Positions 25,985 through 50,369 of a DNA stretch of 64,000 bases are shown in pieces; the first letter of the stretch is position 1; every line of letters starts with the position of its first letter. A program made the position numbers and the translations under genes. This stretch comes from Macrostomum hystrix (lineage: Eukaryota > Animalia > Platyhelminthes): the NCBI GenBank assembly GCA_950097015.1, contig CATNEN010000033.1, forward strand, positions 5,208,001 through 5,272,000, in the 5' to 3' direction. Below the pieces are notes generated by a model. The model was not told the DNA's origin, made no database searches, and saw only the letters and a program-made list of their open reading frames with translations.

Positions 25985-28900
25985 CGTTAGGTTCGCCAGC
26001 ATCGTTAGGTGTGCATTTGTAAATGCATTATCCTGTCTGTGCGTATTGGCATGCAAAGAACCATACTGACAATGAGTGTAGGGCCTCTGACTAGCTTTTA
26101 TTTTTAACAATATCAAGCCCACCGACTCGTGCTTTGTTTGTGGGAATTTTTCCCCGTTCAAGAAGTTCAGCTCCAATTTCTAAAGTGAATAGTTCAGTCT
26201 GCTTCCCAGTGTTTACAATCGGCACAATGGGGCTCAACAGCCCCCCACTTGCATCCGGGTCCTGGCTGGGACGCGAATTTTTTTTAAAAAGGTCTTGGCT
26301 AATTAGAGCGAGTCAGTGGGACAATACTCGCACATACTATCATAGCTAGCTAATGGAAAGAAACTCTCAAATTCTTGTGCACCTGTCTGTTCACAATGCG
26401 CTGGTTTATGGTCAACAAATTCGGATCCCTAATTATTGAGCAATTGGACTGAAAGCGAATCACAATGAGATGAGGAGGCGTTCGAAGTTTCGCCAAGATG
26501 TGCTCAGATTTTGCACCCACTTCGTGTCTAAATGTGGGCTGTGGCCTGTTGGCCGAGGAATAAAGAATAGGAATGGGAGAGAAGGGAGAAGGAATGGGAT
26601 AAAGAGGAGAAGGAATGGGATAGAGGGGAGAAGGAATGGGATAAAGAGGAGAAGGAATGGGATAGAGGGGAGAAGGAATGGGATAAAGGGGAGAAGGAAT
26701 GGGATAAAGGGGAGAAGGAATGGGATAAAGGCGAGAAGGAATGGGATAGAGGGGAGAAGGAATGGGATAGAGGGGAGTAGGAATGGGACAGAGGGGAGTA
26801 GGAATGGGACAGAGGGGAAAAAGAATCGGACAGAGTGGATTAGGAATGGGATAAAGGGGAGAAGGGATGGGAGAGAAGGGAGAAGGAATGGGATAGAGGG
26901 GAGAAGGAATGGGATAGAGGGGAGTAGGAATGGGATAGAGGGGAGTAGGAATGGGATAGAGGGGAGTAGGAATGGGACAGAGGGGAAAAAGAATCGGACA
27001 GAGTGGATTAGGAATGGGATAAAGGGGAGAAGGGATGGGAGAGAAGGGAGAAGGAATGGGATAGAGGGGAGTAGGAATGGGATAGAGGGGAGTAGGAATG
27101 GGATAGAGGGGAGTAGGAATGGGACAGAGGGGAAAAAGAATCGGACAGAGTGGATTAGGAATGGGATAAAGGGGAGAAGGAATGGGATAGAGGGGAGTAG
27201 GAATGGGATAGAGGGGAGTAGGAATGGGATAGAGGGGAGTAGGAATGGGACAGAGGGGAAAAAGAATCGGACAGAGTGGATTAGGAATGGGATAAAGGGG
27301 AGAAGGGATGGGAGAGAAGGGAGAAGGAATGGGATAGAGGGGGGAAGGAATCGGATAGAGGGGAGTAGGAATGGGATGGAGGGGAGTAGGAATGGGATGG
27401 AGGGGAGTAGGAATGGGATGGAGGGGAGTAGGAATCGGATAGAGGGGAGAAGGAATGGGATGGAGGGGAGTAGGAATGGGATAGAGGGGAGTAGGAATGG
27501 GATAGAGGGGAGTAGGAATGGGATAGAGGGGAGTAGGAATGGGATAGAGGGGAGAAGGAATGGGATAGAGGGGAGAAGGAATGGATAGAGGGGAGTAGGA
27601 ATGGGATAGAGGGGAGTAGGAATGGGATAGAGGGGAGTAGGAATGGGATAGAGGGGAGTAGGAATGGGGTAGAGGGGAGTAGGAATGGGATGGAGGGGAG
27701 AAGGAATGGGATAGAGGGGAGTAGGAATGGGATAGAGGGGAGTAGGAATGGGATAGAGGGGAGAAGGAATGGGATAGAGGGGAGAAGGAATCGGATAGAG
27801 GGGAGTAGGAATGGGATAGAGGGGAGTAGGAATGGGGTAGAGGGGAGTAGGAATGGGGTAGAGGGGAAAAGGAATGGGATAGAGGGGAAAAGGAATGGGG
27901 TAGAGGGGAGTAGGAATGGGATGAAGGGGAGTAGGAATGGGATGGAGGGGAGTAGGAATGGGATAGAGGGGAAAAGGAATGGGGTAGAGGGGAAAAGGAA
28001 TGGGGTAGAGGGAGTAGGAATGGGATGGAGGGGAGTAGGAATGGGATAGAGGGGAAAAGGAATGGGGTAGAGGGGAGTAGGAATGGGATAGAGGGGAAAA
28101 GGAATGGGTTAGAGGGGAAAAAGGAATGGGGTAGAGGGGAGTAGGAATGGGGTAGAGGGGAGTAGAATGGGATAGAGGGGAGTAGGAATGGGATAGAGGG
28201 GAAAAGGAATGGGGTAGAGGGGAGTAGGAATGGGATGAAGGGGAGTAGGAATGGGATGGAGGGGAGTAGGAATGGGATAGAGGGGAGTAGGAATGGGATA
28301 GAGGGGAGTAGGAATGGGATAGAGGGGAGTAGGAATGGGATAGAGGGGAGTAGGAATGGGATAGAGGGGAGAAGGAATGGGATAGAGGGGAGTAGGAATG
28401 GGATAGAGGGGGAGTAGGAATGGGATGGAGGGGGAGTAGGAATGGGATAGAGGGAGTAGGAATGGGATAGAGGGGAGTAGGAATGGGATAGAGGGGAGAA
28501 GAATGGGATAGATGGGGAGAAGGAATGGGATAGAGGGGAGTAGGAATGGGATAGAGGGGAGTAGGAATGGGATAGAGGGGAGTAGGAATGGGATAGAGGG
28601 GAGAAGGAATGGGATAGAGGGGAGAAGGAATCGGATAGAGGGGAGTAGGAATGGGATAGAAGGGGAGTAGGAATGGGATAGAGGGGAGTAGGAATGGGAT
28701 AGAGGGGAGAAGGAATGGGATAGAGGGGAGTAGGAATGGGATAGAGGGGAGTAGGAATGGGATAGAGGGGAGTAGGAATGGGATAGAGGGGAGTAGGAAA
28801 TGGGATAGAGGGGAGAAGGAATGGGATAGAGGGGAGAAGGAATGGGATAGAGGGGAGTAGGAATGGGGTAGAGGGGAGTAGGAATGGGGTAGAGGGGAGT

Positions 28901-31900
28901 AGGAATGGGGTAGAGGGGAAAAGGAATGGGGGTAGAGGGGAGAAGGAATGGGATAGAGGGGAGAAGGAATGGGATAGAGGGGAGTAGGAATGGGATAGAG
29001 GGGAGTAGGAATGGATAGAGGGGAGTAGGAATGGGATAGAGGGGAGTAGGAATGGGATAGAGGGGAGTAGGAATGGGATAGAGGGGAGTAGGAATGGGAT
29101 AGAGGGGTGAAGGAATGGGATAGAGGGGAGTAGGAATGGGATAGAGGGGAAAAGGAATGGATAGAGGGGAGAAGGAATCGGATAGAGGGGAGTAGGAATG
29201 GGATAGAGGGGAGAAGGAATCGGATAGAGGGGAGTAGGAATGGGATAGAGGGGAGTAGGAATGGGATAGAGGGGAAAAGGAATGGGATAGAGGGGAGTAG
29301 GAATGGGATAGAGGGGAGTAGGAATGGGATTAGAGGGGAAAAGGAATGGGATAGAGGGGAGTAGGAATCGGATAGAGGGGAGTAGGAATGGGATAGAGGG
29401 GAGAAGGAATGGATAGAGGGGAGTAGGAATGGGATAGAGGGGAGTAGGAATGGGATAGAGGGGAGTAGGAATGGGATAGAGGGGAAAAGGAATGGGATAG
29501 AGGGGAGTAGGAATGGGATAGAGGGAGAAGGAATCGGATAGAGGGGAGTAGGAATGGGATAGAGGGGTGAAGGAATGGGATAGAGGGGAGTAGGAATGGG
29601 ATAGAAGGGGAGTAGGAATGGGATAGAGGGGAGTAGGAATGGGATAGAGGGGAGAAGGAATGGGATAGAGGGGAGTAGGAATGGGATAGAGGGGAGAAGG
29701 AATCGGATAGAGGGGAGTAGGAATGGGGTAGAGGGGAGTAGGAATGGGGTAGAGGGGAAAAGGAATGGGATAGAGGGGAGTAGGAATGGGATGGAGGGGA
29801 GTAGGAATGGGATGAAGGGGAGTAGGAATGGGATAGAGGGGAGTAGGAATGGGGTAGAGGGGAAAAGGAATGGGATAGAGGGGAGTAGGAATGGGATTGA
29901 GGGGAGTAGGAATGGGATAGAGGGGAGTAGGAATGGGATAGAGGGGAGAAGGAATGGGATAGAGGGGAGAAGGAATCGGATAGAGGGGAGTAGGAATGGG
30001 ATAGAGGGGAGTAGGAATGGGATAGAGGGGAGTAGGAATGGGATAGAGGGGAGAAGGAATGGGATAGAGGGGAGTAGGAATGGGATAGAGGGGAGTAGGA
30101 ATGGGATAGAGGGGAGTAGGAATGGGATAGAGGGGAGTAGGAATGGGATAGAGGGGAGAAGGAATGGGATAGAGGGGAGAAGGAATGGGATAGAGGGGAG
30201 TAGGAATGGGGTAGAGGGGAGTAGGAATGGGGTAGAGGGGAGTAGGAATGGGTAGAGGGGAAAAGGAATGGGGTAGAGGGGAGAAGGAATGGGATAGAGG
30301 GGAGAAGGAATGGGATAGAGGGGAGTAGGAATGGGATAGAGGGGAGAAGGAATGGGATAGAGGGGAGAAGGAATCGGATAGAGGGGAGTAGGAATGGGAT
30401 AGAGGGGAGTAGGAATGGGATAGAGGGGAGTAGGAATGGGATAGAGGGGAGAAGGAATGGGATAGAGGGGAGTAGGAATGGGATAGAGGGGAGTAGGAAT
30501 GGGATAGAGGGGAGTAGGAATGGGATAGAGGGGAGTAGGAATGGGATAGAGGGGAGAAGGAATGGGATAGAGGGGAGTAGGAATGGGATAGAGGGGAGTA
30601 GGAATGGGGTAGAGGGGAGTAGGAATGGGGTAGAGGGGAGTAGGAATGGGGTAGAGGGGAAAAGGAATGGGGTAGAGGGGAGAAGGAATGGGATAGAGGG
30701 GAGAAGGAATGGGATAGAGGGGAGTAGGAATGGGATAGAGGGGAGTAGGAATGGGATAGAGGGGAGTAGGAATGGGATAGAGGGGAGTAGGAATGGGATA
30801 GAGGGGAGTAGGAATGGGATAGAGGGGAGTAGGAATGGGATAGAGGGGAGTAGGAATGGGATAGAGGGGTGAAGGAATGGGATAGAGGGGAGTAGGAATG
30901 GGATAGAGGGGAAAAGGAATGGGATAGAGGGGAGAAGGAATCGGATAGAGGGGAGTAGGAATGGGATAGAGGGGAGAAGGAATCGGATAGAGGGGAGTAG
31001 GAATGGGATCGAGGGGAGTAGGAATGGGATAGAGGGGAGAAGGAATGGGATAGAGGGGAGTAGGAATGGGATAGAGGGGAGTAGGAATGGGATAGAGGGG
31101 AAAAGGAATGGGATAGAGGGGAGTAGGAATCGGATAGAGGGGAGTAGGAATGGGATAGAGGGGAGAAGGAATGGGATAGAGGGGAGTAGGAATGGGATAG
31201 AGGGGAGTAGGAATGGGATAGAGGGGAGTAGGAATGGGATAGAGGGGAAAAGGAATGGGATAGAGGGGAGTAGGAATGGGATAGAGGGGAGAAGGAATCG
31301 GATAGAGGGGAGTAGGAATGGGATAGAGGGGAGTAGGAATGGGATAGAGGGGAGTAGGAATGGGATAGAGGGGAGTAGGAATGGGATAGAGGGGAGTAGG
31401 AATGGGATAGAGGGGAGAAGGAATGGGATAGAGGGGAGTAGGAATCGGATAGAGGGGAGTAGGAATGGGATAGAGGGGAGTAGGAATGGGATAGAGGGGA
31501 GTAGGAATGGGATAGAGGGGAGTAGGAATGGGATAGAGGGGAGTAGGAATGGGATAGAGGGGAGAAGGAATGGGATAGAGGGGAGTAGGAATGGGATAGA
31601 GGGGAGAAGGAATCGGATAGAGGGGAGTAGGAATGGGGTAAGAGGGGAGTAGGAATGGGGTAGAGGGGAAAAGGAATGGGATAGAGGGGAGTAGGAATGG
31701 GATGGAGGGGAGTAGGAATGGGATGAAGGGGAGTAGGAATGGGATAGAGGGGAGTAGGAATGGGGTAGAGGGGAAAAGGAATGGGATAGAGGGGAGTAGG
31801 AATGGGATTGAGGGGAGTAGGAATGGGATGGAGGGGAGTAGGAATGGGATAGAGGGGAGAAGGAATGGGATAGAGGGGAGAAGGAATGGATAGAGGGGAG

Positions 31901-33292
31901 AAGGAATGGGATGAAGGGGAGTAGGAATGGGATAGAGGGGAGAAGGAATGGGATAGAGGGGAGAAGGAATGGGAGAGAGGACACCAACCAACCAACAACG
32001 CCCCTGAATCGCCCTTTCCTGACCGCAGGTGAATAGTGTCTCATCGAACTGCTCATTCCAAAATGACTGCTCAGTGCTGAGCGGCAGTGTGTCAGGTAGG
32101 CGATTCTTTTAGCCATTTCTAATTGAGTATTTTGTGGAAGGCAAGCTGGTAAATTAAAGAAATATTCGCAGCATGCACTGAGAGTAGCGTGTATTGCGTA
32201 TTGTGTTAAGTTTATTACATAATGGTGACTTCTCTCATTATCCGAAGAGTGCACCTACTGCCTGGCAGCCAAGGATTCGAAATCTGCCAGCCCGCTGACC
32301 TCCACGCTCTTGAATAGAAGCGGTGGGGGCCATCTCAGCTGGACTACAATGGACCTGGACCTCGGCAGCATCGAGTCCACCGACTGCCTGGCTGTGAAGC
32401 TCATCGAATATATTAAATTTGCGCAAGAGAAAGGCTCCGTCAAACTGTTCAACCTGTGCGGCTTGCCACGGCGAAGCAGCCGGCTGCTGCGGCTGAAGCT
32501 GCTGCTGAAATTCGATGCCTCACGATCGGCCTCGGTGGCGGTTCTCACCGAGAAGTTCCACCGGCAGCGTCTGTGCAACCAGTCCGTGTGCGTCAGGCGA
32601 GCTCACCTCAGGCTGCTCGGCTCTCCTCCTGAGCCCAAAAGCTGCCCTCGTCCAGATCGGCTTCGACAACGTCAGCTGCCTGAGCAGGTCGAGCGACAGC
32701 GTCTGCAGCGGTCTCACGGTCGGCCAGCTCGGCTGCGGCTCGGCCCGCTTCGAGCTGAACTTCGACCAGAGCCATGAATACGCCGAGGTGGGCATTCAGG
32801 GCGGCGGAACCAATCAGGTGAGTTCGGCTGCTCACTGGCCACATTGAATTATCAAACCAGCGAGCTGTTATAACAAAAATAATAAACCGAATCTCCACCT
32901 AGACTGCCGGCTGGGTGATCAAACAGGACGTGAGCATGATGCCTCCAAGCAGAGGAAAAAAGGATTACATCATTTTCAAAGTTGAGAAGGTGAGTAGCGC
33001 TTTGTAGCGAGTCTCTAGTTACCATGGTTACCATAAGGCTTATTAACTAAAAACGGCACACAACATTTAGACTTTTTTTTTAATCCTTCAGTACAAAAAA
33101 GTTTACTGGCTCGCCGACGATGACATGTCGAATAACTTCGAGCACAACCTGCTGAATGCCGTCGGCTACGCTGTCGCGGACGCCTGTCCCGAGACTGACC
33201 CAGCGGACACTGCGACCACGGCAAAACTACTGACGGCGCAGAATATGGGTTCCGATTTCTCTCCACTGACCCTGCCTCTGATTTCAGTGCTG

Positions 33293-33329
<37 letters not shown>

Positions 33330-33829
33330 GGCTACTTCCTCCGGCGTCGATGTCGTCAACGCGGCCTCCGCTGCTGCTCATCGCGGCTTCCGCGGAGCTT
33401 CTTCGACACAGGGCGGCCGTCCAGCTGCGCAGCCGCCTGCAAGGCCGCTGCCGCCTGCGCATCCTGCGTGCCGGCCTGAGCCAACTCGCCCCCGGCATGG
33501 CCCGCTCCTGCCAGCTGCTGCTCTTGCTCAGCACCGACGCCAGCTTCGGCGACTTCCGCCTCGATGAGTGCCCCTCCGAGCAGGCCAGACGCGAACTCCT
33601 GACCGTCCTGCACACTGAGCGGCACCGGATCTGGCGGCTGCACCTCGGCGACGGCGGGCCGAGCCTCGGTGACCCGTCGGCGCAGCTGGGGCCGGCAGCC
33701 GATGACAGGCTCGTGCGGCTGGACGACTCGGCCGAGTTGGCGGCCAAGCGGCTGATCGGCGAGCTGCTGCAGCCGCTGCGGGCCGTCTGCCCTGCGGAGT
33801 TGAGCTCAGGGCTGGGGTTTTTTGTGTGA
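24882..33829 (+). CDS. Putative IL-17-receptor-like type I membrane protein with a SEFIR/TIR-like cytoplasmic domain (exons 24882-24944, 32029-32095, 32248-32591, 32656-32817, 32903-32989, 33092-33829; about 486 aa)
   Basis: Signal peptide MLTLLLLTAFCCLATS; phase-consistent GT-AG chain; Cys-containing ectodomain (NCSFQNDC...HLSWTTMDLDLGSI); Leu-rich TM; tail LLLIAASAELLRHRAAVQLRSRLQGRC.L.IL...SCQLLLLLS. The exon1-exon2 link spans 7 kb and the 32592-32655 intron boundaries are inferred; an in-frame ATG at 24825 is an alternative start. Confidence 0.6.
24985..25520. repeat. Degenerate 15-bp minisatellite (gcgattctccttggg) in receptor intron 1
   Basis: Direct periodicity starting shortly after the donor at 24945. 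Confidence 0.85.
25905..25982. repeat. (ATCT)n microsatellite
   Basis: Perfect tetranucleotide run. Confidence 0.95.
26571..31980. repeat. 5.4-kb purine-rich 21-bp satellite (ggaatgggatagaggggagta), intronic
   Basis: About 250 units; + strand almost free of C; ends about 50 bp before the acceptor at 32028. Confidence 0.97.
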
Positions 33830-34271
33830 TAATTCACTGACCTGATCGTGGCCGCTAGCTTTGCTGAGGAACACTTTTATGGGAGTTTTATCAGTTTTTT
33901 ATTCGCTTTTCAAACTGCGATAAGTACATTTTTCTGACTGTACATTTGTACGGAACAGTACGTTTCCTTAGTAGTTTATTCACGCGAATTTTTTTCCTAT
34001 TGAGATTTTTGTTTCTGCTTCGTGTATACCGACAAATAATAAATAAATTACCTATTGAATATACCTGCCAATCGGTCACGCTGGTATTCGCTGGCTCTAA
34101 CAGGAGGGGTGGCGTACGATAAGACAAGAGGAGGGGTGGGTGCGTGACTTGGAAGGGTAAGAGAATTCAGCTACGGACCAATCAGAAGGCGGTGAGGGGA
34201 GAGAGATCAAAGACAAAAGTGAGGGGAGGCTAGACAGAACAGCTGTCTGCCTGTGAGAGCATCGTGTAGAG

Positions 34272-35382
34272 CAGGGGTCGGCAAACTCCGGCCCGCGGGC
34301 CAGATGCGGCCCTCGAAGCTCCCAAATCCGGCCCGTTGCCCCTTCTGACATCTACAGTGCAGTCCTTTTTCATCTCTCTCGTGTCTAATCTCTCCCGTGT
34401 CTAATCTCTCCTGTGTCTCATCGCTCGCGTGTCTAATCTCTCCCGTGTCTAATCTCTCCTGTGCCTCATCTCTCCCGTGTCTAATCTCTCCCGTGTCTCA
34501 TCTCTCCTGTGTCTCATCGCTCTCGTGTCTAATCTCTCCCGTGTCTCATCTCTCCTGTGTCTCATCGCTCTCGTGTCTAATCTCTCCCGTGTCTCATCGC
34601 TCTCGTGTCTCATCTCTCCCCTGTCTCATCTCTCCCGTGTCTTATCTCTCCCGTGTCCTATCTCTCCCGTGTCTTTTCTCTCCTGTGTCTCATCGCTCTC
34701 GTGTCTCATCTCTCCCGTGTCTCATCTCTCCCGTGTCTTATCTCACCCGTGTCCTATCTCTCCCGTGTCTTTTCTCTCCTGTGTCTCATCGCTCTCGTGT
34801 CTCATCTCTCCTGTGTCTCATCGCTCTCGTGTCTAATCTCTCCCGTGTCTCATCTTTCCCGTGTCTTATCTCTCCCGTGTCCTATCTCTCCCGTGTCTTA
34901 TTTCACCCGTGTCCTATCTCTCCCGTGTCTTTTCTCTCCTGTGTCTCATCGCTCTCGTGTGTCATCTCTCCCGTGTCTCATCTTTCCCGTGTCTTATCTC
35001 TCCCGTGTCCTATCTCTCCCGTGTCCTATCTCTCCTGTGTCTCATATCTCCCGTGTATTATCTCTCCCGTGTCCTATCTCTCCCGTGTCTTTTCTCTCCT
35101 GTGTCTCATCGCTCTCGTGTCTCATCTCTCCCGTGTCTCATCTCTCCCGTGTCTTATCTCTCCCGTGTCCTATCTCTCCCCGTGTCTCATCTCTCTCGTG
35201 TCTTATCTCTCCCGTGTCTAATCTCTCCCGTGTCTAATCTCTCCCGTGTCTCATCTCTCCCGTGTCTCATCTCTCCCGTGTCTCATCTCTCCCCTATCTC
35301 ATATTTATACAGTCAATGCGGCCCGCTGTCGTCTTTTAGGTTCTCTCTTTGGCCCGCCAGCAAATAAGTTTGCCTACCCCTG
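34272..35382. mobile_element. hAT (Charlie/Buster-type) MITE with an internal CT-rich repeat expansion
   Basis: TIRs caggggtcggcaaact / agtttgcctacccctg, GGCCCGC subterminal motifs, perfect 8-bp TSD gtgtagag (34264-34271 and 35383-35390) of nnnTAnnn type. Confidence 0.92.
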
Positions 35383-35819
35383 GTGTAGAGGGACGAAATC
35401 TTAACAGTAGAGCTACCAAAGGGAGAATTGCCCCCCCCTGACAAGCAACGCAAGCGTACGAAACTCAAATTGTTTATTTTGAAACAATAATCAAGCCGTC
35501 AGCGGTTCTGACTGAAGGTCAGATTTTTCCTTAAGAGCTAGTGTATTTCATACACCCCTATACACGAATTCGTACTGCGCCTAATCACCGGGGTCGGTGT
35601 CCTACCCTGGGTTTGGTAGCTGTAGCGGACTGAAATAAACAGCGTAAATAAAAAAATTATGAATAATAAAAAATATCTAAGAAAAAAATAAAATAATTAA
35701 AACTAAATAACTGAAACAACAATAGAGTGCGCAAAAGTGACATTCGATTTAAGCCTATTCCGCTGACAACTGAGCACACACGCACACAGATACCGTAAGG
35801 AGTCACACACTAACAGAGA

Positions 35820-35965
35820 AGTGTCCATCCGCCCTGACTTTATCATCATCAGGCGATATACACTATCACTGCATGTTGCTTGGAGTTTGCCCCTCGATGG
35901 CATAAATTGCACGACAAGCCCACAAGCCAATTCTCTCCTCGGCTGCGCCGCAAATGAATGTTTGC
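35820..35965 (+). repeat. Dispersed repeat copy 1 (homologous to 39560-39745 and, inverted, to 51005-51125)
   Basis: Shared cores cctgacttt.tca and aaattgcacgacaagccc.caagcc..tctctcc. Confidence 0.7.
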
Positions 35966-36004
35966 CAAAGAAAAATAGTTAGCCCATATCGCATTCTTAT
36001 TGGC

Positions 36005-36170
36005 CGCAACTCCAGAGCTCGGGGTAGAGTTGGCGGGGTGGTTGGTGTCTGGCCTGGACCGGTCCATTCTGATTGGCCGGAACTCTAGAGCTCGGGGTAG
36101 AGATGGTGGGGTGGTTGGTGTCTGGCCCGGACCGGTCCATTCTGATTGGCCGGCACTCTACAGCTGGGGA
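36005..36170. repeat. About 76-bp tandem duplication (2+ copies)
   Basis: agagctcggggtagag..ggtggttggtgtctggcc.ggaccggtccattctgattggccgg occurs twice. Confidence 0.8.
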
Positions 36171-36481
36171 TAGAGTATTTGTGAAGTGACCTCTAGAAAA
36201 GCTGTTCTAAAAAAGAAATAATTAAAAAACACATATAGTAGGCAAAGTGGTTTTGTTACTATATGGCAATGAATGGGCAGGTTGAGCCAAGATATTAGAA
36301 ATATACAAGTCAATTCTCTCCGTGGGCAAAATTGATTGCAGTTTTGGGAAACTACTCGTAGATTGCAAAAAGGTATATTTTTGCTTTTATTTTCACTCTG
36401 GATATGAAAGCTAGCTCGTAATATTGAAAATAAAGTTTTGTATTGTCTATGGCTGCTGGGGGGTTAACCAATTGTAGCTGG

Positions 36482-37283
36482 TCAGCCAGAGCCGCTGCGA
36501 TTGGCTGGGACGGCGCAGGACACTCCGAGCCTCGCGAAGCCAAGCTCCAAGTTGCCGTAGTCCACGGTCTTGAGCACCCAGATGGGCATCTGGACTGGCT
36601 CCTGTTCTGGACACGGACAGCGGACATCCGGCATCAGCCGCGGCAAGCCGTTCGTCATCGGCGTTGATAACGAAGTTCGGCTGCGACTGGAGCTTGCTGA
36701 ACTTGCTGTTGCAGCTGAACTGCTGGTAAAGATAGCTGCCGCAGCCCAGCATGGCGTTGATGCTCTGCAGGTCCGCGGCCGTCAGGCGCTCCGGCGGCGA
36801 CGGTGCCGATCGATTGTGCAGAGTCACGCAGCCGACATCAAAGAGCTCAGTTCTCAGCTCCAGCTTCGTACCGTTGCCCACAGCAGCAAAAAATGAAGCA
36901 GGCAGGCGGGCCTTCCGGCAGTCCAGCAGCAGCTCGGAGGCCATTTTCTTGATGGCGCTCCGGTTGCATCGGCACTCCGACTGCAGGCGCTTAGCGGGCA
37001 GCGCTGCGGGCAGGCCGAACGCGGTCGTCAAGTTGACTTCAGAGAAATAGTCGTAACAGACCCGTTCTCTATTCTCATCTGGGTCTTGGTCCTGGTTGTA
37101 CATCGAGTCGTGGCTTTGATCGCACTTTCTGTCAATCACGGCATACGGTGTGGTCTCACTTAATGCGCCCCAGCCGCAGATTTTCTCAGCGGGGACATGG
37201 CGCAGCTCCGCAGTCAGCAGCAGAAGCGGCAGCAGCAGCAGCGGCAGCGGCAGCAGCAGCGGAAACTTTAAAGTTGCAGACAT
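36482..37283 (-). CDS. Secreted tandem (two-domain) IL-17-like protein A; intronless, 266 aa after removing one extra base near 36645
   Basis: Signal peptide (LLLPLPLLLLPLLLLTA); domain 1 ...QSECRC...DC...FDVGCVTL; domain 2 PNFVINADDER(L)PRLMPDVRCPC...VQMPIWVLK...RLGVSCAV (last part in the shifted frame, stop at 36482). Confidence 0.65.
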
Positions 37284-37799
37284 TGTGGGCAGTTCTTGCA
37301 GATGGCAATGCTGCATCTGTGTCTTATGAAAACTGGTTCAGTACCGTAGATTGAAAACCGCAGACTCGCATGCATGATATTTATATTGATTATTTTGTAC
37401 AGTCGTGTCATTAGCGGGTGGAACTTCCTGAATATTAGTAACTCTCACTTTCCATAACTGCTAAATAAAGCCCACAGTGTCACATTTCTAGATGAGGCAT
37501 CATTTTAGCGGCTGTGGCTGCGGCTGAGTGAAAGGTGTGAACAGATATTGCGGCCCTTAGAAGAACAAAGTACTTCCGCAACTTAAAACATTTTGCCTTA
37601 TTTTAAGCTAAACATTAAATAGAAAGAAAATGTAAGACATTTAGTCACGGAAAAGGATTTCATTGTATGATTCGATTGCTAAAATTAATTTTGCAGCTAA
37701 AAACAGATTTCAGTGTTAACCACTTTTTTGGCTATTCGAAATTAACCTCGACACTAAAAAAATGTTTCTAATCTAATCAGTAAAGCGTGCTAAAGACTA

Positions 37800-37955
37800 T
37801 GAGGAGGCTGTTCTCAGAGGAGGCTGTTCTCAGAGGAGGCTGTTCTCAGAGGAGGCTGTTCTCAGAGGAGGCTGTTCTCAGAGGAGGCTGTTCTCAGAGG
37901 AGGCTGTTCTCAGAGGAGGCTGTTCTCAGAGGAGGCTGTTCTCAGAGGAGGCTGT
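37800..37955. repeat. 16-bp minisatellite (gaggctgttctcagag)
   Basis: Direct periodicity. Confidence 0.9.
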
Positions 37956-38032
37956 TAATCGAGCAGCTAACTGCGGTGTAAAACTGAAGCAATGCACTTG
38001 CAGCAAGCAAAAGAGAATTGCGTCTGTGATAC

Positions 38033-38910
<878 letters not shown>

Positions 38911-49558: not shown

Positions 49559-50369
49559 ATGACGATGCGGCCTTACATACTGCTGGTCCAGCTGCTGCGG
49601 CCGCTGCTGCTGTTGCTGCAGGCTTGGCCGAGCAGTTGTTATCGAGTCGATGAATATCACGCATGCGGCTGGGGTGTCAACAGCAAAAACCTGACCTTCG
49701 CCGCTTATTCAGGTGTGGCATATACCCAGCCTGAAGCTTGCGAGACCAGCAGCATGGGCGAGACCAAGCAGGACTACCCAGACATCCCAACTGACAACAG
49801 GAGACGCCTGTGCCCGGACCTGTTCTGGCCAATCGAGAATCCTGCGCCAACGCTGCCACGGCTGCGCTACGAGTCCGGCTGCCAGTGCAACACGAGCCAG
49901 AACCCGGAGCTAAACCTGCACATGCAGTGCCGGACCTTCCAGCTGCCCGTGGCTTCTCTGGAGCCCGTTGGAAACAGCTCGACTCTCCGGCTGGTAACTC
50001 GACTGATGGGCGTCGGCTGCGCCGCCCTGCTCAGCCTACCGCGGTCTCGCCGGAGCCCGGAGCCGCTAACTGGCAGCGACCTGCGCCGCCTCAATGCCAT
50101 GCTGGGCTGCGGTCGCTCCGTCTACCAGCCCGTCAGCTGCAGCGCCATCGCCAACCAGTCGCAGCCGGCGTTCGTGATCAACGCTGATGACGACCGGGTG
50201 CCGCGGCTGCTGCCGGACGTTCGCTGCCCGTGCGACGGCCAGGAGCTGGTGAAGTTGCCGCTCTGGGTTCTCAAGCAAAAGAAAGACGGGCAGCATGGTG
50301 CAGGAAATCGCTAGTGTTGGGGTGTCTTGTGCAGTTTGTGTAACGTGGAAGCTGCTTTGCTCACTCTGA
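49559..50369 (+). CDS. Secreted tandem (two-domain) IL-17-like protein B; intronless, 269 aa after removing one extra A near 50282
   Basis: Signal peptide; domain 1 RLCP...LPRLRYESGCQC...QCRTF...MGVGCAA; domain 2 PAFVINADDDRVPRLLPDVRCPC..LVKLPLWVLK..(shifted frame)SMVQEIASVGVSCAV; clear paralog of 36482-37283. Confidence 0.68.

Follow-up and report, generated by a model that had tools for sequence, protein, structure and literature searches.

A probable two-domain IL-17-type ligand gene of Macrostomum hystrix, apparently frameshifted by a single base in the genome assembly

Within a window of 64,000 nucleotides of the Macrostomum hystrix genome (C33:5208001-5272000; the assembly comprises 220 Mb in 42 contigs) we identified a gene, here designated A, which in our judgement is probably intact and consists of a single exon. 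Its product is predicted to be a secreted precursor of 266 amino acids carrying two tandem IL-17-type domains, which may pack on each other like a dimer. From the N- to the C-terminus, the protein would comprise a signal peptide, an extension of ~45 residues, a first domain (D1), a linker of ~28 residues and a second domain (D2). In the assembly gene A appears frameshifted, which would be explained by one T that is either spurious or private to the assembled sequence.

Results

Gene A and its reading frames

The features of gene A and the position of its paralog B are given below (window coordinates).

36482..37283, minus strand: coding region of gene A in the assembly, with the ATG at 37283 and the stop codon at 36482-36484; a single exon plus one extra base.
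37283 to a stop at 36447, minus strand: long open reading frame of gene A; an alternative in-frame ATG lies further upstream, at 37316.
Stop at 36482-36484, minus strand: second open reading frame of 58 codons, overlapping the end of the long one.
36645..36646, minus strand: extra frameshifting base, TT in place of the single T in every other source (alignment with the second genomic copy, L003, and with contigs of public runs).
37200..37283, minus strand: predicted signal peptide, approximately residues 1-28; its hydrophobic core, rich in Leu and Pro, was judged by eye from the translation.
36813..37073, minus strand: D1, residues 71-157, a putative IL-17-type cystine-knot module with Cys76, Cys104-x-Cys106, Cys122 and Cys152.
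36729..36812, minus strand: interdomain linker, residues 158-185, delimited by alignment, with an N-glycosylation sequon and Cys181 and without a dibasic site.
36485..36728, minus strand: D2, residues 186-266, the putative second module of IL-17 type, containing Cys191, Cys222-x-Cys224 and Cys256, which the assembly splits over two frames.
36386..36391, minus strand: AATAAA polyadenylation signal of gene A, read from the sequence; contigs of runs X2 and X5 stop 14-18 nt downstream, at 36372 and 36368.
49559..50348, plus strand: paralog B, which shares the two-domain layout of A and is ~44% identical to it (A' versus B').

The N-terminal extension of ~45 residues lies between the signal peptide and D1. 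It contains a stretch (residues 35-64; window ~37100-37180, minus strand) that reads C-G-W-G ... T-P ... D-R-x-C ... H-D ... Y. The resemblance of this stretch to the calcium-loop/active-site signature of secreted phospholipase A2 (PDB 2not, E=0.79) is probably due to chance, as paralog B retains no more of it than C-G-W-G. Gene A is flanked by long satellite and microsatellite arrays (window 26350-32000 and 38100-38750), which are composed of a ~930-bp unit present on many contigs with 85-91% identity, plus runs of the (CTGT)n type.

A second copy of the region lacks the extra base

According to a search of the whole assembly, contig C10 carries the region once more, in inverted order. DNA alignment over 1801 bases showed 99.1% identity between the window and the copy of gene A located there (L003). 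In this alignment, the window reads GGCTTGCC where C10 reads GGCTGCC, i.e. there is one extra T at window position 36645/36646, which is exactly the place (about 36645) at which the preliminary description of the locus had suspected a 1-nt indel. Apart from the indel, the coding region of A differs from the C10 copy by two substitutions, at 37162 and 36551. The C10 copy encodes an uninterrupted frame of 266 amino acids (L003:1465-2262) and thereby reads into the C-terminal tail that had been predicted to be hidden by the indel, the sole change within the tail being an N/K allele at 36551. The tail had also been said to align with paralog B. Indeed, both open reading frame pieces of A match paralog B (49559..50314, plus strand) without a change of frame (tblastn E=4.9e-28 and E=5.6e-10), which shows that the tail beyond the shift is no product of chance but conserved protein sequence.

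Paralog B was likewise compared with its copy on C10 (L002; 99.3% identical), revealing two extra G residues in the window, at 50288 and 50347. The former resides within GACGGGCAG and shifts the frame of the last ~20 codons, while the latter converts the true TGA stop codon to TGGA. L002 encodes a protein of 262 amino acids, which ends with V-S-C-A-V-C-V-T. The neighbourhood of A and B is thus represented twice in the assembly: window ~30000-38550 corresponds to C10:3110179-3118799 (inverted), and the genes are also found at C10:3095236-3095970. Between the C33 and C10 copies the genes are 99% identical and the flanks 93-95%. These copies may represent uncollapsed haplotypes or a recent duplication accompanied by gene conversion.

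Public sequencing runs across the extra base

Eight public runs, derived from one organism and two studies, hold part of the window stretch, and contigs of four of them (X1, X2, X4 and X5) were aligned to positions 36000-37800. All contigs of these four runs, which represent both studies, that cover 36645 lack the extra T; by depth this amounts to 85/85 for X1, 15.9/15.9 for X2, 4.6/4.6 for X4 and 5.4/5.4 for X5. X1, a WGS-like run, carries the C10-type letter at every differing site, and the other runs show mixtures. At 36551 and 36468, X2, X4 and X5 agree with the window, yet they lack the T, and an X5 contig of 444 bases is identical to the window apart from this base. Therefore, the window haplotype exists free of the frameshift, and the runs do not simply reflect the C10 form. 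Most likely gene A is intact and the extra T is a consensus error of the assembly or a private variant; a T in the assembled animal would be compatible with these contigs.

The latter case, i.e. a real T in the assembled animal, would imply that the C33 copies of A and B are a decaying duplicate or a null allele, the C10 copies alone being functional. We regard this as quite improbable. It would fit with the fact that both A and B carry +1 insertions in the window relative to their C10 copies, that contigs demonstrate presence rather than absence of a sequence, and that the exact sequence of the window occurs in none of the listed runs (best word share 0.75). However, three runs lack the T while carrying the window-type alleles at both 36551 and 36468, and the coding region of A is only two substitutions away from its C10 copy when the indel is disregarded. 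Moreover, the insertions are changes in homopolymer length (T to TT, GG to GGG), and such changes are typical consensus errors of long reads in duplicated regions that are hard to polish.

Two further explanations were dropped: programmed ribosomal frameshifting, as the extra base is missing from all public contigs examined, and an intron behind the frame change, as the C10 copy differs by exactly one base at this site and the contigs show no joints. From the lack of joints it also follows that gene A has no intron. The contigs of X2, X4 and X5 amount to 42-44 Mb per run and, at this locus, are confined to 36318-37212; a single contig of X2 (36372-37089) extends from D1 across the linker into D2. 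Because of this limited coverage and, in X2 and X5, contig ends located just past the AATAAA signal, these three runs look like transcript assemblies. Gene A is probably expressed, a reading that takes the kinds of the runs from guesses ('DNA?', '?').

Family members and internal duplication

A third two-domain gene (L005) is located 711 kb upstream and shares 23% identity with A' at the protein level. Hence, three paralogous genes of this genome, A, B and L005, exhibit the two-domain layout. A Leu-rich hydrophobic N-terminus is common to all three, as judged by eye. According to the alignment, the linker of B contains RSRR, and dibasic sites are absent from those of A and L005. In addition, there is a single-domain relative of D1 (L013, C30:1430521-1430865), a 168-aa open reading frame with 7 Cys residues following the signal peptide. 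Two canonical single-domain IL-17 genes, 16 kb apart, are also present in the genome (L007, C38:1181602-1181847; L008, C38:1165061-1165294). They score 32.1 bits and 20.9 bits, respectively, against the Pfam IL17 family (PF06083), whose gathering score is 24 bits. Accordingly, the flatworm has ordinary IL-17 ligands beside the tandem family.

D1 and D2 have diverged to about 25% identity, and their profiles match with E=1.8e-4 in hhalign. Alignment of the seven family domains revealed seven invariant columns (C, P, C-x-C, P, V, C), four of which are Cys. Taken together, the profile match and the seven-domain alignment indicate that the internal duplication is real. The preliminary description had noticed that an earlier unit in A repeats the layout of the tail, and the invariant columns confirm this observation. 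Its proposal that two domains are fused in one chain agrees with the uninterrupted frame on C10, the X2 contig extending over both domains and the homology of D1 and D2.

A contains 12 Cys residues, 7 before the linker and 5 from the linker onward, i.e. an odd number in both halves. In the numbering used for the IL-17 knot, disulfides link Cys 1/4, 2/5 and 3/6, and the types T1A/B/C, T2 and T3 are distinguished (PMC11087794). The T1C type, which is found among invertebrate IL-17s, has lost Cys3/6 (PMC11087794). D1 possesses Cys1 (C76), Cys2 (C104), Cys4 (C122) and Cys5 (C152), but neither Cys3 nor Cys6, and has an additional Cys at +2 (C106). D2 possesses Cys1 (C191), Cys2 (C222), Cys5 (C256) and the +2 Cys (C224), but lacks Cys3, Cys4 and Cys6. 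As had been stated before, and as is read directly from the sequence, both domains lack the Cys at +5 as well as the second Cys after V-G/S-C. Of the canonical knot set, which combines Cys2/Cys3 (C-x4-C) of strand 2 with Cys5/Cys6 (C-x-C) of strand 4, both domains thus have Cys2 and Cys5 only. The idea that one disulfide pair was coherently lost holds insofar as Cys3 and Cys6 are missing in both domains, but this is already-known variation, namely type T1C (PMC11087794). Since T1C is known among invertebrate IL-17s, the absence of Cys3 and Cys6 leaves membership in the superfamily possible. The cysteines of D1 would conform to this known type plus the extra +2 Cys, with disulfide pairings as predicted from the Cys positions.

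Relationship to IL-17

The family likely belongs to the IL-17 branch of cystine-knot cytokines. All tests agree in this, each of them being weak: Pfam, PDB and structure comparisons favour the IL-17-like identity that had been assigned by inspection, but none does so at a conventional threshold (15.8-21.4 bits, E=0.019 and Z 3.8, respectively).

Against the Pfam IL17 model, the score of A' was 15.8 bits (E=0.019), with residues 94-153 aligned to model positions 15-78, and that of B' was 17.6 bits (E=0.0051) in two stretches, including a D2 fragment on model positions 7-29. The closest family member is L013 with 21.4 bits (E=3.3e-4; positions 1-78 of 81). None of the three reaches the gathering score of 24 bits, and none of them yielded a Pfam family other than IL17. 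A seven-domain profile that contained no canonical IL-17 was compared with 177,635 PDB sequences. All hits (21/21) were human IL-17A, the best with E=0.019, and the alignment, covering 63 profile positions, includes the P-x-R-x-P ... C motif, the strand preceding the hairpin turn and V-G-C. No IL-17 was hit in PDB sequence searches when the D1 profile, the D2 profile, A' or L013 were used separately. Within the genome, the D1 profile aligned with the two canonical IL-17 domains over 32 columns of motif 1 (hhalign E=9.1e-5). This motif (C/S-P-W ... R-x-P ... A-x-C), located upstream of strand 2, is matched by the D1 profile. The merged profile aligned with the canonical pair with E=6.8e-4, and the D2 profile gave no significant match to the canonical domains (hhalign E=0.1). 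Neighbours in a protein language model, to be taken as a lead only, were IL17, NGF and Spaetzle clusters at 0.84, with the IL-17 domain cluster being nearest to D1.

When A', L013 and the L007 domain were used as queries in word-based protein searches, no relatives outside of this genome were retrieved, the searched libraries evidently not containing this species. As the A protein failed to find even itself in these libraries, the absence of relatives is no sign of restriction to a single lineage. An exhaustive profile search of 1.84 billion representatives gave a single hit, a HYR-repeat protein, which was dismissed as spurious. Because no outside relatives could be collected, the alignments used for structure prediction were thin.

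An AlphaFold2 model of D2 based on the seven-domain alignment reached a pLDDT of 68 (core 72-86) and displays one long hairpin, the IL-17 fold being a cystine-knot growth-factor fold with two long beta-hairpins. In Foldseek, the first 50 rows for this model were almost all IL-17A/F/25, with E-values of about 0.6-2. An exhaustive comparison with 48,161 chains by VIA-align yielded 17 chains with Z>=2, and 17/17 were cystine-knot cytokines. IL-17A ranked best (Z 3.8, 64 residues, rmsd 4.2), followed by NGF (3.3), IL-25 (3.0) and, lower, Spz (2.5) and PTTH (2.5). Structure prediction had been expected to show IL-17-like domains. The D2 model resembles IL-17A first, at the scores given above; the model of full-length A (pLDDT 37) is unusable and gives no structural support to D1. 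A two-chain prediction of D1 with D2, for which the family alignments were not used and in which the fold of the partner was uncertain, gave an ipSAE of 0.00 and is evidence in neither direction. A fold search of the ESM Atlas returned only unrelated bacterial and viral proteins with TM values below 0.5 and was discarded.

The domains could also represent another branch of cystine-knot cytokines (neurotrophin, Spaetzle, PTTH or trunk-like) or a secreted, Cys-rich family restricted to this lineage, and the receptor would then not be of the IL-17R type. NGF comes within one Z unit of IL-17A (3.3 versus 3.8), the language-model neighbours are mixed (NGF, Spaetzle, IL17), and the Pfam IL17 scores stay under the cut-off. 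Receptors of IL-17 combine FN3 ectodomains with a SEFIR domain, and a search of the genome for SEFIR (PF08357) came back blank, although such a blank is uninformative. Even so, we consider a different branch rather improbable: the sequence searches return IL17/IL-17A only and never NGF or Spaetzle, D1 aligns over motif 1 with the canonical IL-17 genes of the same genome, and its Cys pattern fits the T1C type of IL-17 (PMC11087794).

Discussion

IL-17 cytokines are dimers of separate chains, and whether a homo- or a heterodimer is formed decides which receptors are engaged. In gene A, D1 may pack on D2 in the manner of the paired chains in an IL-17 dimer, and this pairing would create a single-chain, asymmetric ligand for IL-17-type receptors. 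As the linker of A is free of dibasic sites, A would stay one chain. B, with RSRR in its linker, could in contrast be cut into two chains.

Alternatively, the two IL-17-type domains might not pair within the chain at all. They could form a swapped dimer or a chain-like oligomer, or the product could be a polyprotein that is cut to give two single-domain ligands. The furin-type RSRR in the linker of B and the existence of the single-domain relative L013 speak for such a scenario, as does the odd number of Cys in both halves of A (7 and 5), with which inter-domain or inter-chain bonds are possible. However, the linkers of A and L005 have no dibasic site, and the ~28-residue linker and the ~15 residues that precede the D2 core provide sufficient length for the domains to pair intramolecularly. 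On balance, we find the absence of intrachain pairing somewhat unlikely. Going beyond the preferred reading of paired domains, the single-chain IL-17 ligands of Macrostomum might be obligate asymmetric pseudo-heterodimers of two diverged domains, with a stoichiometry and asymmetry that are set by gene fusion rather than by the pairing of chains, and with furin turning B into a two-chain form. We put this forward as a speculation whose correctness is doubtful; if true, these ligands would be the equivalent in nature of the single-chain cystine-knot hormones that have been engineered.

Among known systems, the invertebrate ligands of type T1C (PMC11087794) come close to D1: they are secreted, have a core formed by a long beta-hairpin, contain motif 1 (C-P ... 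P ... C), keep Cys1/4 and Cys2/5 and have lost Cys3/6. They differ in having one domain per chain and dimerising, whereas gene A encodes two domains in one chain. Gene A moreover has the extra +2 Cys (CxC), its D2 lacks Cys4, and it does not reach the Pfam IL17 cut-off. Human IL-17A (e.g. PDB 5vb9, 8dyf) is the only PDB protein matched by the family profile and the top structural match of D2. Identity amounts to about 17-24%, and IL-17A differs in possessing C-x4-C and C-x-C (type T2) and in forming homo- or heterodimers of separate chains through interchain disulfides. Neurotrophins, Spaetzle and PTTH have the cystine-knot growth-factor fold in common and stand just behind IL-17A in the structural list of D2, but at the sequence level neither their Pfam families nor their PDB chains were matched.

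A search for other two-domain IL-17s had been suggested, and B and L005 share the layout. The arrangement has some precedent: sea-urchin gene models with two (SPU_022838.1) or three (SPU_019350.1) IL-17 domains were mentioned in 2015 (PMC4517768). Like gene A, these models have more than one IL-17 domain per predicted protein, a likeness that is one of description alone. The models were produced automatically from tandem gene arrays and received a passing mention (PMC4517768). In gene A, unlike in these models, both domains reside in one intron-less frame, one contig extends over both, and the layout recurs in three paralogs. Our literature search retrieved nothing linking Macrostomum with IL-17 and no description of a characterised single-chain IL-17.

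For annotation, the data suggest that real genes of the duplicated C33/C10 region are truncated by erroneous insertions of single bases. For the biology of the family, flatworms would join the map of IL-17 evolution. If the proposed pairing is true, A, B and L005 would fix a heterodimer genetically and would thereby provide a simple system to study how IL-17 receptors read the asymmetry of their ligands.
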